Part shown: piece after piece, positions 36,204 through 44,899 of the stretch
Layout of the letters: every line of letters starts with the position of its first letter
Numbering within the stretch: the first letter of the stretch is position 1
Virus record (IMG/VR): IMGVR_UViG_3300044644_001125
Location: 1-64,000 of that record
Strand: one strand, 5' to 3'
Length of the DNA stretch: 64,000 nt
The notes under the pieces: generated by a model
Seen by the model: only the letters and a program-made list of their open reading frames with translations
The model's database searches: none
Told to the model about the DNA's origin: nothing
Program-made: the position numbers and the translations under genes

Positions 36204-36253
36204 TGAATTTCCTCATTTAACTGATCTTGTATTTATGATGCATCAATTATCTT

Positions 36254-36532
36254 TTAGACATCACGAACAGCAAGCACACTCCATTTACAACTTTTCAAAT
36301 CAGTGCCACGTTCAACAAGATCTGGAAATGGATATAAACTTTTAGCATGTCGATCACCATGCTCTTCACTCGACCAATACCAGTGAATTCCTGTAAATGC
36401 TCTAAACTCCCTAAACTCTGCTTCAGTTGGCAATCTCCAACCAATTCTACCATCTACATTTAATGCAAAACAGTAAAATTTGGCAGTATCCCAGTCCATG
36501 CTTAATTTGGTTTCGTAGAATTCTAGGGTCAT
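36254..36532 (-). CDS. DUF1566/Lcl C-terminal (C-type-lectin-like) domain protein
   Basis: WDTAKFYC..L...GWRLPTEAE, YWSS, VLAVR; start at 36532 by TAATG coupling. Confidence 0.75.
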   Translation of the reverse strand: MTLEFYETKLSMDWDTAKFYCFALNVDGRIGWRLPTEAEFREFRAFTGIHWYWSSEEHGDRHAKSLYPFPDLVERGTDLKSCKWSVLAVRDV

Positions 36533-37131
36533 TAGAGATCTCTTACCGGGTGAATTAAACACGTTTCATCCGGATCATTGCCAATATCATCGGAATGCCA
36601 AAAATAAGCATGCATAAGGTTAAAGTAATAACATTCTTCCGGTGTGGGAAACCGCCAGCCAACCTTACCATCGATATTAAGTGAAAAACAATACATCTGC
36701 GCTTCTTCTAATGATGTAGCTTTGATATACGACTGTGGTGCTAACTCAACTGGTATGTTATAAAATGGTTCTATTGTTCTAACAGCTCTAACATGCAATT
36801 CATAATCATCAAACCCCTCATCGTCTGAATCAGTTAGGAAGTCGTAGGTTTGTATAACAGTAAGCGGTTCTTCTTCTGATTCAACTATTCTATAACTACT
36901 AGACCAATATTCTGGAGTCTCAACCGATCCATCAACATACGCATCGCATAACTTAGTATCTAATCTAACTTCTTGTATGTATTGTTCCCGTATTATGTAC
37001 ATTTCGATGATGGTAGGTAACCTCCAACCTTCTTTATCATCTGCTACAAGATTGTCACAGTATTCAAGGGCATCTTCCCAAGTCGATACAACCTCTGTGC
37101 TTTTTGGTGCTAATTCTAAGTTAAAGTTCAT
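36532..37131 (-). CDS. Tandem DUF1566/Lcl domain protein
   Basis: WEDALEYC...GWRLPT..E...YWSSS...VRAVR followed by a second EEAQMYC...GWRFPT..E domain; ATG at 37131. Confidence 0.75.
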   Translation of the reverse strand: MNFNLELAPKSTEVVSTWEDALEYCDNLVADDKEGWRLPTIIEMYIIREQYIQEVRLDTKLCDAYVDGSVETPEYWSSSYRIVESEEEPLTVIQTYDFLTDSDDEGFDDYELHVRAVRTIEPFYNIPVELAPQSYIKATSLEEAQMYCFSLNIDGKVGWRFPTPEECYYFNLMHAYFWHSDDIGNDPDETCLIHPVRDL

Positions 37132-37164
37132 ATAGATATCAAAATGTAAGTTATTGGTATGGTA

Positions 37165-37193
37165 ACTATACCATATAAGTAGACGTGACGCAA
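37165..37193 (-). promoter_or_regulatory. Sigma70-type promoter for the DUF1566 pair
   Basis: Minus strand TTGCGT (37193-37188), 17 bp, TATAGT (37170-37165). Confidence 0.6.
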
Positions 37194-37264
37194 ACATTAT
37201 CTTTTAGAAATGTTAAATAGAGGTAATAAACTAATTACTTATTAATTTCAAACGGTGAACTATC

Positions 37265-38188
37265 ATGGCTAAAATCAAAACATTTGCAACTAAGTTAAAA
37301 GAATGTATTAAACGTAACAGAGAACGGTGTGCGGATTTATACGACGATCCAACCAAAGTCGAATTTGTTGACTATATCACATGCCCAATTTACGGTATTA
37401 GAATGCGACAACTGAAAAGTACCTACATAACTGGTTATTTATTAATGACGGTTGAGGAATTCGACCAAAAATATCCCAATTTTCAACGCGAAGCTGATTC
37501 CAAAGTAGTGAATGTGAAAAAAGGTATTGCTAAAATTGATCCTGCTACTGGGTTAACTAAACATCAGTTATCAGTGGAAAAGTCAAGAATTTCACTTTCA
37601 ACTCCCGACGAAAACGGTGAAACTGGATATAGTAAACGAGGTCAAAAAACTAAAGCCACTCATATGAATAATGTGGATGATCAAGGAAGAAATGGATATT
37701 CGCAGCTAGCATCAAAGGCTATCACCAAGGGAAACCAAACTAAAGTTGATAAAGGTTTGATACTGCCACCAGAGGAACGTGATGATTTTTATAGATATAA
37801 GATTGTTGTTAGTACATTAACTGAAAGATTGCGTAAGAAATTAACGCAAGGGTATTGTACAGGATTGGCTGGAAAACCAGGAGCATACCACATTGATCAT
37901 GTGTATTCAACGTGCGATGGTTTTAAAAATGGAATTAGCCCACTTGTTATCGGTAATATCGCAAATCTTAAAATGATACCATGGGAAGAGAATATCGAAA
38001 AACATGCAAACTCTGCAAAGAGTATTGAGCAATTATTTGAAGAAACTGGCTACACCAAGGAGCAATCTGATATTGAATTTGCGATAACGATGGAAATGAT
38101 TGCCCTTGCTGTACAGAACGAGACACCAGTCAGTGGTGCATACATTGTAGAACATTTGAATGAAGCAGCATTACGTTACAAACAATAG
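37265..38188 (+). CDS. Free-standing HNH-like homing endonuclease
   Basis: C-terminal YHIDHVYS...N...N beta-beta-alpha-metal-like motif; lies between split intein 1 halves; TTAAATA at 37213-37219. Confidence 0.65.
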
Positions 38189-38495
38189 TTATGATATTTT
38201 AACGCCGTTCGGGTGGGAATCATTCGAAGGGATAATATTCAATGAATCGGTTTATAAACCGTCTAGGAAAATTATCTTTTCGACTGGTAATTCCATAACT
38301 GCAACGTTAGACCATCGATTTTATATCGATGGTCTCGAAGTACGAGTGGAAACTCTAAAGATTGGTGATTCACTTGATTCGGCGATTGGCCCTCAGCTAA
38401 TCGTCGATATCGATGCTGTGATATTAACGCATACATTCGAAATATTCAATTCTGAAAATCATATTATAGTTGCAAATGAGATTCATTCTCATCAA
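38160..38495 (+). mobile_element. Split intein 1, C-fragment (112 aa, ends His-Gln)
   Basis: ILTPFGW, block [21 protein letters not shown]|C. Confidence 0.85.
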
Positions 38496-43302: not shown

Positions 43303-43357
43303 AGGTTGACTTTGTACCCTTTGGTTTATAAGATTGAAGGGTACTTGGAGAGCTACT

Positions 43358-43672
43358 ATGACCTTAACTGAAATATTCAATTTAGATCCACCCGAAGATG
43401 AATGGGATTTACCACAGATCGAATTCGTCATGTTTGAAATCGGTTCTGGTAAGTTGTACATCTCAAGTAAAATAGCAGGTCGGGTATGTGCAGTTCAGTA
43501 CTTAATTGATGACAATAATATACGTATTGAATACCCATTTTCAGATGTAGAAGGTAAGTTAGCTGATTTCTTAGTTAAAAATCGATCTGCTATCCTAGAG
43601 TTTTGGGAATGTGGTGGTTCGTTTATGTTATGTGAGTTGGTTAATTTCGTTGAGAATCGATTTACGGATTGA
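43358..43672 (+). CDS. Hypothetical protein
   Basis: ATG at 43358 after GGAG; TTGACT-17-TAAGAT at 43306-43334. Confidence 0.55.
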   Translation: MTLTEIFNLDPPEDEWDLPQIEFVMFEIGSGKLYISSKIAGRVCAVQYLIDDNNIRIEYPFSDVEGKLADFLVKNRSAILEFWECGGSFMLCELVNFVENRFTD

Positions 43673-43734
43673 TTAATTGATGCACCGATTGATGCACCGA
43701 TTGGTTAGACCGGTGCATGCTGGATGCTTATCTT

Positions 43735-44740
43735 TTAGAGCAGTTCTTGAATAGATGCCCAAGAAAGTTGATGCTTGGTCAATATATGAATAATAACATT
43801 ATTATCTTTCATAGCTTGATTGATCTTAGGGATATCTTTAGGTATAATCCAATCGTTCTTTGGATCTAAGTAAATATCTTGATCGGGTAAGTAAAAGTCA
43901 GCAAAATACTTTTTCTTTAATCCATTAAGGACGTAATACATGTAAGGTGGTCTTGTCAACGGAATACCATGATCATCCAAATCTTTGGCAACTCGATACT
44001 CGTAAGAGGATTCTAACCAAACACGACCAGCGAATGGTGAATCATACCAACCATACGCGTGGTTATTTTGATTACCACCGAAGTTTGGATTATTAGTTGC
44101 AGTTCTTGATATAATCGCTCTAGCGCATTTAGTAGAACACGTGGATCTCTCGGTCGTATTGTGAAACCATTTACCACATTCTTTACATTGCGACACCTTA
44201 GAATATGGTGGTTTAGTTGGACGATTATATGAAGATTTTTTAGTTTTGGTGGTATTACTACTTTTTGCAGTACTATCACTTTCTGGCAATCTCACACCCA
44301 TAGCTGTTTTTGCACAAGTATCAGAACAAGTTAACCGTTTTCCAGTCTTAGGAAACCATTTACCGCATACTTTGCACTGCGATACTAGGGTATACGGTCC
44401 TTGTTGAGTAATTGTCCTTTAATGACGAACTCGTTTCAATACCAACCGAGTTTCTAGGAGTACGGAATTTGTTATTAACGGTGGCCGCACAACTAGATGA
44501 GCAGTATTTGTTGAAACTGGTACTAGTTTTCTTACCGCAGCATATGCAGCTTGATAGACTATCAATATGATCTTTTAATTCGGATACGTACATCTCCTTT
44601 TTAGAATAAATACAACAGCACAGTAGTTCAATACGACGATTGGTTGGTTTACCACTGTTTTGGTGCTTACGGAAGATATGATGCTTGAGCATTCTCTTGT
44701 TTGTGTATTGTCTACTGCAGGTTTCACATGTATGAATCAT
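43735..44740 (-). pseudogene. Frameshifted Zn-finger-repeat PD-(D/E)XK (TnsA-like) endonuclease
   Basis: ORFs 44360..44740 and 43735..44301 join by a +1 shift near 44418-44363; repeated CK.CGKWF...TCS..C units; ESSYE...YFADFYLP...YLDPKN. Confidence 0.65.
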
Positions 44741-44767
44741 AAGTTTTAAATTAAAGTTGAGTTAATC

Positions 44768-44793
44768 GGTTGTGTATGGCCCCATACACAACC
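44768..44793. other. 12-bp inverted repeat next to a minus-strand late promoter
   Basis: GGTTGTGTATGG-CC-CCATACACAACC; ATAAATA on the minus strand at 44801-44795. Confidence 0.6.
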
Positions 44794-44899
44794 ATATTTA
44801 TGAACGGTTTTCATTATCTTTTAGCTAAATACCTAGTCTAAAAGATGATTTTCTCAAGGTGGTTTTCATTATCTTTTAGATAAATACAATATATGAAGT

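Follow-up and report, generated by a model that had tools for sequence, protein, structure and literature searches.

A 12-bp intergenic repeat in the variable terminase region of an uncultured freshwater jumbo phage

The stretch of DNA analysed here, which we call the window, comprises the opening 64 kb of one virus contig of 327,256 bp (IMG/VR record IMGVR_UViG_3300044644_001125; 38% G+C; CheckV completeness 92%) from a lake-water metagenome, and represents an uncultured freshwater jumbo phage. A sequence-only reading of the window had singled out two units, a pair of Lcl_C/DUF1566 genes and a frameshifted endonuclease-like gene, each lying between direct copies of the 12-bp motif ATTATCTTTTAG, and had proposed that they were cassettes of an insertion and excision system. 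The motif is the commonest 12-mer of the genome, and we argue below that it is probably a regulatory site at the borders of transcription units.

Results

The two units and their motif copies

Relatives for comparison were the IMG/VR contigs L001-L006, with 98-99% identity in a neighbouring protein, and L007, with 79%; additional pieces of one relative cover 68-97 kb of the genome, and four other lake metagenomes (runs X2-X5) were compared, as assembled contigs, at 34000-39900. Genes were taken from our own simple gene model (446 genes, 87% coding), which is crude and misses small RNA genes. Megablast with the 36-45 kb region gave no match among GenBank phages, and tblastn reached distant jumbo phages only, such as PA5oct with 28% identity in one structural protein.

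Both genes of the first unit are on the minus strand. Lcl_C gene 2 (36532..37131; 199 amino acids (aa), with its start set by homology to L001) scores 49.9 bits against Pfam PF07603, above the cut-off of 34.9, and gene 1 (36254..36532; 92 aa) scores 25.2 bits, below the cut-off, and is a clear paralogue, so that the DUF1566 identity proposed for the pair holds. The family has 59 matches in the genome, 27 of them above the Pfam cut-off, mostly in tandem arrays (e.g. at 236.7-240.3, 108-110, 224-232 and 324-326 kb), and in about 21 of the 59 paralogues a motif copy falls in the stop codon or no more than 4 nt from it, always in the same orientation. A contig search with gene 1 returned the window's own context only.

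The pair is flanked by exact plus-strand copies of the motif at 36246..36257 and 37196..37207. The former supplies the TAA stop of gene 1 and is part of the control region of the next minus-strand gene downstream, a 237-aa gene (35490..36203; precomputed Pfam label Phage_T4_Y05D; phrog_2274). The latter sits in a divergent control region, followed on the minus strand by gt-TTGCGT-N17-TATAGT, toward the Lcl_C pair, and on the plus strand by TAAATAG, toward a 307-aa gene and the C-terminal terminase piece. The sequence-only reading had placed this copy just upstream of a -35 box of the pair, and it does precede TTGCGT, but that box has 3 of 6 matches, with TATAGT following after 17 nt, and our promoter scan made no call there. 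The 37196 copy is the inverted upstream element of this weak TTGCGT-N17-TATAGT promoter.

The second unit is a zinc-finger endonuclease-like gene (43735..44740, minus strand) with an N-terminal C2H2 zinc finger. It is frameshifted, as had been proposed, by an 8-nt deletion near 44400 relative to the intact 333-aa gene of L003. Its PHROGs matches, to phrog_15137 'endonuclease' (E=2.7e-6) and phrog_1271 'HNH endonuclease' (E=4.3e-6), are both weak, and a NinG match falls below the Pfam cut-off. The plus-strand copy at 43727..43738, which is preceded by a GCACCG...CGGTGC hairpin and conserved in L001, L003 and L006, supplies the stop. All four motif positions were thus as first reported, but this copy has one mismatch (CTTATCTTTTAG) and is not exact. 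In both units the claim that the motif provides the stop codon is borne out: in the open reading frames (ORFs) 36254-36562(-) and 43735-44301(-) the stop is the first TAA of the motif's minus-strand reading cTAAaagataat. That reading, CTAAAAGATAAT, carries TAA in two frames, and stop-codon overlap is recurrent, with 16 of 60 anti-oriented tandem copies falling in a 5-nt bin over the stop of the upstream gene. The motif supplies stop codons because it offers TAA in two frames on the gene strand in a tightly packed genome.

Beyond the endonuclease-like gene lies a three-copy cluster (44813..44879) with copies at 44813 (plus strand, exact), 44838 (minus strand, one mismatch) and 44868 (plus strand, exact). 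The first of these had been taken to lie just beyond a late promoter of the endonuclease. The supposed promoter is CATAAATAT, while the word enriched genome-wide upstream of genes is TAAATAC; the 44813 and 44868 copies each have CTAAATAC or ATAAATAC directly after them, pointing rightwards to a tRNA-Thr (AGT; 44900..44974, plus strand) and away from the endonuclease. A further exact copy (44997..45008, minus strand) stands just after the tRNA-Thr.

Abundance, placement and conservation of the motif

The genome holds 139 exact copies of ATTATCTTTTAG, 249 copies with at most one mismatch, and 45 further copies of the variant ATCATCTTTTAG; the window alone has 32 copies with at most one mismatch, where 0.9 are expected. 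By our gene model, the exact copies divide into 98 between genes, 15 across a gene end and 26 within genes. The density is 3.2-5.0 copies per kb in intergenic regions, whether tandem, divergent or convergent, as against 0.23 per kb in coding sequence, a difference of about 15-fold. Exact copies are missing from 0-30 kb and from most of 170-300 kb, and are dense at 30-170, 220-235 and 300-327 kb; the motif-rich zones include the accessory small-gene region at 30-53 kb, which has many indels among relatives. The copies are mostly single, and in tandem intergenic regions 62 are co-oriented and 60 anti-oriented with the genes.

Conservation across the 139 copies extends over about 15 bp, with nothing beyond about -7 to +12 and a weak T..TCA just upstream. 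Among relatives, the motif has an identity of 0.90-1.00, compared with 0.81-0.95 for the flanking non-coding DNA, and in L007 four of five copies are intact within flanks that are 46% identical. In relatives at about 60% protein identity it is absent, and a literature search for the 12-mer retrieved only an unrelated insect paper.

At this density, flanking by direct copies is expected and does not single out a cassette. By inspection, about 7 of the 12 intergenic gaps at 32.3-45.5 kb hold at least one copy, so that any gene or gene pair there sits between two copies, and neighbouring copies are in direct orientation about half the time. The genes of the accessory region of this genome all appear motif-bounded, and flanking alone is no sign of mobility.

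The motif and promoters

Copies of the motif recur at several fixed distances from TTGACA-like hexamers, against a background of 1.5-1.9 per offset. The arrangement TTGACA-N8-motif is found at 14 copies (e.g. genome positions 77626, 79010, 82124, 88442 and 95066); here the motif fills the spacer and its TAG starts a TAGAAT or TAGACT -10 hexamer. Another 12 copies form TTGACA-N3-motif, with the motif within the 17-nt spacer. In inverted orientation, 12 copies form motif-N2-TTGACA and 31 overlap TTGAC by one base. The spacing between copies is regular as well: 11 of 18 diverging pairs are 26-28 nt apart start to start, which leaves a 16-bp gap containing the -35 hexamer, and direct arrays have a period of about 32-33 nt. 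One such array (41037..41140), between the C-terminal terminase piece and gene 41162, consists of three minus-strand copies 32 nt apart and one plus-strand copy 16 bp off, and in L001 and L007 it has other copy numbers and spacings. When IMG/VR was scanned for TTGACA-N8-motif, essentially one related contig came up, the rest being chance matches.

A subset of copies at 77-101 kb belongs to TTGACA-N8-motif-AAT promoters followed by a conserved leader of about 40 nt. Small minus-strand genes are arrayed in this part of the genome, and every one has TTGACA-N8-ATTATCTTTTAGAAT and a leader ...CCACCTTAACAAAGCACTACGGAGTAAAC..ATG, and the word GCACTAC is found upstream of 44 genes.

A different word, TAAATAC, is about 10-fold enriched within 80 nt upstream of genes (51 genes; in the window at 32607, 44826 and 44881), resembles the T4 late promoter TATAAATA and is probably a second promoter class of the phage. 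The copies at 32593, 44813 and 44868 have (C/A)TAAATAC or GGTAAATAC directly after them. We considered motif plus TAAATA as a fixed late-promoter unit and rejected it, as no single offset reaches four cases. Hairpins stand 5' of the copies at 43727 and 44813 and are mutually unrelated. In a sigma70 scan of 34-46 kb, 44 sites were called against 43.7 in shuffles, so there is no excess and the four best sites alone are convincing. Neither an RNA polymerase beta-like subunit nor a sigma70-family protein was found in the genome, which fits transcription by the host polymerase.

Variation among co-occurring strains

If the two units were cassettes, they should come and go as wholes. The stretch 36246-37207, however, is never missing as a unit in L001-L007 or X2-X5. 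Lcl_C gene 1 is present in every relative (L001/L002, L003 and L006), with its own motif-ag-TTGACA-N16-TACAAT promoter in L003 and L006. Gene 2 varies on its own, with its junction at the overlap between the two genes: L001 retains it, L003 has two other Lcl_C genes in its stead and L006 lacks it. In L003 a motif copy stands between gene 1 and the next gene, so that two Lcl_C genes lie between two direct copies. L006 has a single copy there, whose right flank is that of L001 (65/65 identical) and whose left flank matches that of the inner (second) L003 copy (77%). The L006 haplotype looks as if two direct copies had recombined and the stretch between them had been deleted, and exactly this sequence would result from a crossover within CTAAAAGATAATAGTTG. 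An empty site retaining one motif copy, as the sequence-only reading had predicted, may be seen in L003 against L006, but the two named units themselves are never absent as units.

Junctions on motif edges are found elsewhere in the region. The 237-aa gene (variant 35487-36242) is absent in L001, L002, L003 and the X3 and X5 contigs, which have 11 nt instead, and in L006 an unrelated 138-aa plus-strand gene takes its place. All three forms abut the motif start at 36246, the right junction of the variant; the other end lies at the -35 hexamer of a TTGACA-N17-TACAAT promoter, with no motif. The 307-aa gene of no known function (37265..38188, plus strand; phrog_5104) is present in the window and L003 and absent in L001, L002, L006 and the X3 and X5 contigs; its left junction is the motif end at 37207 and its right junction has no motif. 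In the non-coding block (34305..35470), three different replacements begin exactly at a motif edge, 35243. The extra tRNA-Asn of L003 (L003:13298-13476) is inserted at most 2 nt from the copy at 44997 (junction 44994-44997). Counting non-coding junction ends, 3 of 25 coincide with a motif edge (null 1.7%, P=0.009) and 11 of 25 within 20 nt of a motif (null 19%, P=0.004); the 25 ends represent about 19 events, partly linked, at the precision of BLAST ends. For the relatives covering 102-104 kb and 132-134 kb the closest has only 59% identity, and for lack of a close relative there the junction statistics are limited to 30-54 kb and 68-97 kb.

The endonuclease region behaves differently. L001, L002, L004, L005 and L006 differ from the window over a stretch that starts inside the gene (44215) and ends at a sigma70-type promoter (45312), and L007 lacks 43346-45312. 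No end of these variants (44214, 45313, 43345) is at a motif, and 43727-44824 is never missing as a unit in L001-L007. The sequence-only reading had named breakpoints away from the motif among the signs that would refute it, and by that measure the endonuclease cassette is refuted. The gene is intact in L003 and absent in L007, and in L001 and L006 its N-terminal part is a different one; the N-terminal zinc-finger part is swapped together with the tRNA in L001, L004, L005 and L006. An 89-nt tRNA-Thr replaces the 75-nt one in L001 (L001:13058-13146), L004 and L006.

Other variants have junctions of their own, namely an intein with a homing endonuclease gene (38754-40271), a TnpB element and an insertion at 73409-73433. 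The TnpB insertion (L001:8074-9580; also in L002 and L006) is 1.5 kb long and G+C-rich, follows immediately on the ATG of the gene 41162 homologue (window 41164) and encodes a 423-aa TnpB with OrfB_IS605 and Cas12f-like TNB domains; an Rfam scan of the L001 insertion gave no intron match. At genome 73409-73433, relative L082 (L082:6638-7195) has a 558-nt insertion with a 25-nt direct repeat of the target on each side. Within the early-gene array at 77-97 kb, the junctions of gene indels lie inside the repeated promoter-leader sequence. Two similar TTGACA-N17-TATACT promoters flank a 56-aa gene (45147-45317; window 45076-45348). In L001 and L003 the gene is absent and both promoters are retained, spaced by about 35 nt; the 12-mer has no part in this indel.

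The split terminase and neighbouring features

The variable region occupies the gap in a fragmented gene for the terminase large subunit, whose break falls at the Walker B motif (LIY/C...N/CDE, slashes marking the junctions). The N-terminal piece (32647..34266, plus strand; phrog_36964 profile positions 20-522) ends in a 38-aa intein N-fragment, which begins CLDGDT (junction ...SLIY/CLDGDTTV...). The C-terminal pieces (38160..41040, plus strand) start with an intein C-fragment of about 112 aa, after which the terminase resumes as ...N/CDE..., matching T4 gp17 from residue 255, in the Walker B motif. Atypical split terminase inteins of this type are GOS-TerL (37 + 115 aa) and AceL-TerL (PMC11766414); the present one, predicted from its sequence, has 38 + about 112 aa against the 37 + 115 of GOS-TerL.

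Within the 3.9-kb gap, whose content differs among strains, lie the 237-aa gene, the 307-aa gene, the Lcl_C pair and a non-coding block of 1.15 kb that contains a Polynucleobacter-1 RNA. The block (34305..35470) has nine motif copies and is one of four in the genome that are 77-83% identical. Its Polynucleobacter-1 RNA (RF01718; 35014-35164, minus strand) is likewise one of four copies (68-80 bits), the others being at genome 165335-165485, 232703-232853 and 310903-311053, each in a motif-rich block; these four RNAs hint that the host is perhaps a freshwater member of the Burkholderiales. The minus strand has two strong TTGACA-N17 promoters, at 35486-35458 and 35415-35387.

A second terminase interruption (38754-40271) is found in the window only, being absent in L001, L003 and L006. 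Its intein-like ends surround a free-standing ORF for a DUF7487 homing endonuclease (38937-39965), the 'fractured gene' arrangement known for genes with split inteins (Dassa et al. 2009, PMC2677866), and a terminase with both interruptions would need two trans-splicing steps. The first gap shares this arrangement with those fractured genes, but where they have a single endonuclease gene it contains a small RNA gene, the Lcl_C pair and further variable genes. Genes for a gp32-like and a RecA/UvsX-like protein are near the variable region. The latter (46513-48060) has a weak HINT-domain match at residues 154-222 and may carry an intein, and at its 3' end L001 and L002 have a 1.16-kb insertion or replacement (window 47990-48096).

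Discussion

The interpretation that we favour, and consider probable, is that ATTATCTTTTAG is a lineage-specific element, conserved by selection and mainly intergenic, and that it is the site of a regulatory protein marking the borders of transcription units, as is suggested by its position at fixed distances around host-type promoters. The protein would bind the motif as an operator or as an UP-like element. An inverted copy abuts or overlaps the -35 hexamer, and a direct copy fills the spacer and gives the TAG of the TAGAAT -10; head-to-head pairs 16 bp apart and tandem arrays with a period of about 32 bp are further arrangements of the motif. Under such a scheme the two supposed cassettes would be ordinary units between neighbouring copies, the downstream copy in each case belonging to the control region of the next unit. 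Modules in the terminase gap are gained, lost and swapped among co-occurring strains, with some junctions on the motif, and it can be hypothesized that this happens by general homologous or microhomology recombination between repeated regulatory sequences, together with selection that keeps the sites. No dedicated excision system would be needed.

Several observations weigh against this interpretation. Of the 249 copies, 176 have no TTGACA-like hexamer in the strict registers that we scored, and copies are equally dense in convergent and in divergent intergenic regions, which shows that the motif is not purely a promoter element. Several copies come after hairpins, where the T-rich motif could act as a terminator tail. 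The site is a predicted one, and the protein that would bind it is putative. As to the junctions, a conserved island in diverging DNA draws alignment ends to itself with or without recombination.

The copies after hairpins lead to the idea of a signal at the RNA level, in which the transcribed motif would be a U-rich terminator tail, or a processing or binding site at mRNA ends. Many copies are indeed at the 3' ends of genes, and some are directly 3' of GC-rich hairpins (e.g. genome 314430, 156903 and 132798). The balance of orientations relative to transcription argues against it, as does the TTGACA-N8 class, in which the motif lies at about -22 to -10 and would go untranscribed; moreover, head-to-head pairs at a fixed spacing of 16 bp suit a DNA-binding protein. 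We therefore think an RNA signal very unlikely. More improbable still, to the point where we give it hardly any weight, is a dedicated integron-like system, in which a recombinase would recognise the 12-mer and move the units as circles of about 0.95 and 1.09 kb. Both named units do lie between direct copies, and the L003/L006 pair resembles a precise loss between such copies. Yet searches of the 92%-complete genome for the tyrosine and serine recombinase domains Phage_integrase (PF00589) and Resolvase (PF00239) gave no match where positive controls matched, orientations are balanced (62 and 60) with mostly single copies, neither unit is absent as a unit in the seven relatives or, for the first unit, in the four metagenomes, and the endonuclease junctions lie off the motif.

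For the second unit taken alone, the variation could be due to a free-standing homing endonuclease beside a tRNA, where double-strand-break repair and co-conversion would produce a patchy distribution without the motif being involved. The distribution itself is in keeping with this, from absence in L007 through an intact gene in L003 and a frameshifted one in the window to the swapped N-terminal part and tRNA in four relatives, and so are the PHROG matches to endonuclease and HNH endonuclease families. Those matches are weak, however (E about 1e-6, with NinG below the Pfam cut-off), and the gene is a candidate nuclease with a putative target site; we put this route at slightly short of an even chance. 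The gene itself is, as predicted from its sequence, a decaying free-standing gene of the homing-endonuclease type whose variation is independent of the motif.

A recombination linker as the main role of the motif deserves more attention than either the RNA or the integron-like alternative. The motif with adjoining promoter bases, e.g. CTAAAAGATAATAGTTG, would be the crossover substrate for UvsX/gp32-type recombination, within a strain or between co-infecting ones, much as the promoter-early stem-loops (PeSLs) behave in T4-type phages (PMC2839356, PMC4122927). Such a role is suggested by the enrichment of junction ends at motif edges, by the three different sequences abutting one copy at 36246, by L006, where one copy has the right flank of L001 on one side and the second L003 copy's left flank on the other, by the varying copy number of motif arrays, and by the nearby gp32-like and RecA/UvsX-like genes. 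Against it, the common core of 12-17 bp is short beside the roughly 100 bp of PeSLs, the 237-aa and 307-aa variants have the motif on one side only, the junctions of the endonuclease, tRNA, intein and TnpB variants are elsewhere, and junctions cluster equally at TTGACA promoters and the conserved early leader. Strict conservation and fixed promoter distances favour a regulatory function first. All in all, a linker as the main role seems to us possible, with the balance clearly on the other side. The fuller proposal, that the motif, perhaps held by protein, serves as a linker through which promoter-gene modules, including the 59-copy Lcl_C family, are exchanged among co-circulating strains, is a speculation that we find unlikely. 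If it were true, this would be shuffling in the manner of PeSLs, by way of a core nearly tenfold shorter and in a phage lineage remote from T4.

High-copy regulatory words reveal the organisation of transcription in an uncultured jumbo phage, and the motif offers a handle for finding the regulator of the phage and for sorting its genes into temporal classes.

Comparison with known systems

Integron gene cassettes, with their attC sites and integrase, are also compact units bordered by a repeated site. Here, however, neither an integrase nor a resolvase was found, each unit has its own promoter, the site is not an imperfect palindrome, and the units were not seen absent as units.

Similar in form are the dispersed asymmetric operators of phages, such as the stoperators of mycobacteriophage L5, bound by the repressor gp71, and the C1 operators of phage P1. 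They too are short asymmetric sites present in tens of copies, in short intergenic spaces and at or over promoters. The L5 stoperators have a single orientation relative to transcription; in the present genome, by contrast, there are 139 to 249 copies with no orientation bias (62 and 60). The genome also differs in showing neither an integrase nor any other sign of lysogeny, and the motif is a candidate operator for a putative repressor.

The PeSLs of T4-type phages are composites of about 100 bp, in which a strong sigma70-like early promoter is joined to a stem-loop terminator, and recombination between flanking copies gives mini-circles (Arbiol et al. 2010, PMC2839356; Comeau et al. 2014, PMC4122927). 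Like PeSLs, the motif is a repeated regulatory sequence tied to sigma70-type promoters and concentrated in variable regions rich in small genes of no known function; some of the gene gains and losses that separate close relatives end at the repeats; one haplotype pair resembles the loss of a stretch between direct copies that leaves a single copy; and gp32-like and UvsX-like recombination genes are present. Unlike in PeSLs, the core measures 12-17 bp instead of about 100 bp and need not be accompanied by a stem-loop. The motif also faces either way and takes up several set distances around the -35 hexamer; many of the variable genes are flanked by it on a single side, and the phage is only distantly related to known phages. 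The comparison with T4-type shuffling made in the sequence-only reading thus stands as far as the variability of the region and the enrichment of junctions at the motif are concerned, but not for a dedicated insertion and excision system. As an analogy, the PeSLs are a reasonable and fair description of how this region may have evolved, with repeated promoter-linked sequences at module borders. That high-copy regulatory repeats double as the borders of mosaic segments is already known from the T4 PeSLs; what is new here is the very short core, its use in either orientation and at several fixed spacings relative to the -35 hexamer, and its presence in a distant jumbo-phage lineage. If the motif does guide the exchange of modules, shuffling of the PeSL type would extend beyond T4-type phages and would be possible with very short homology.

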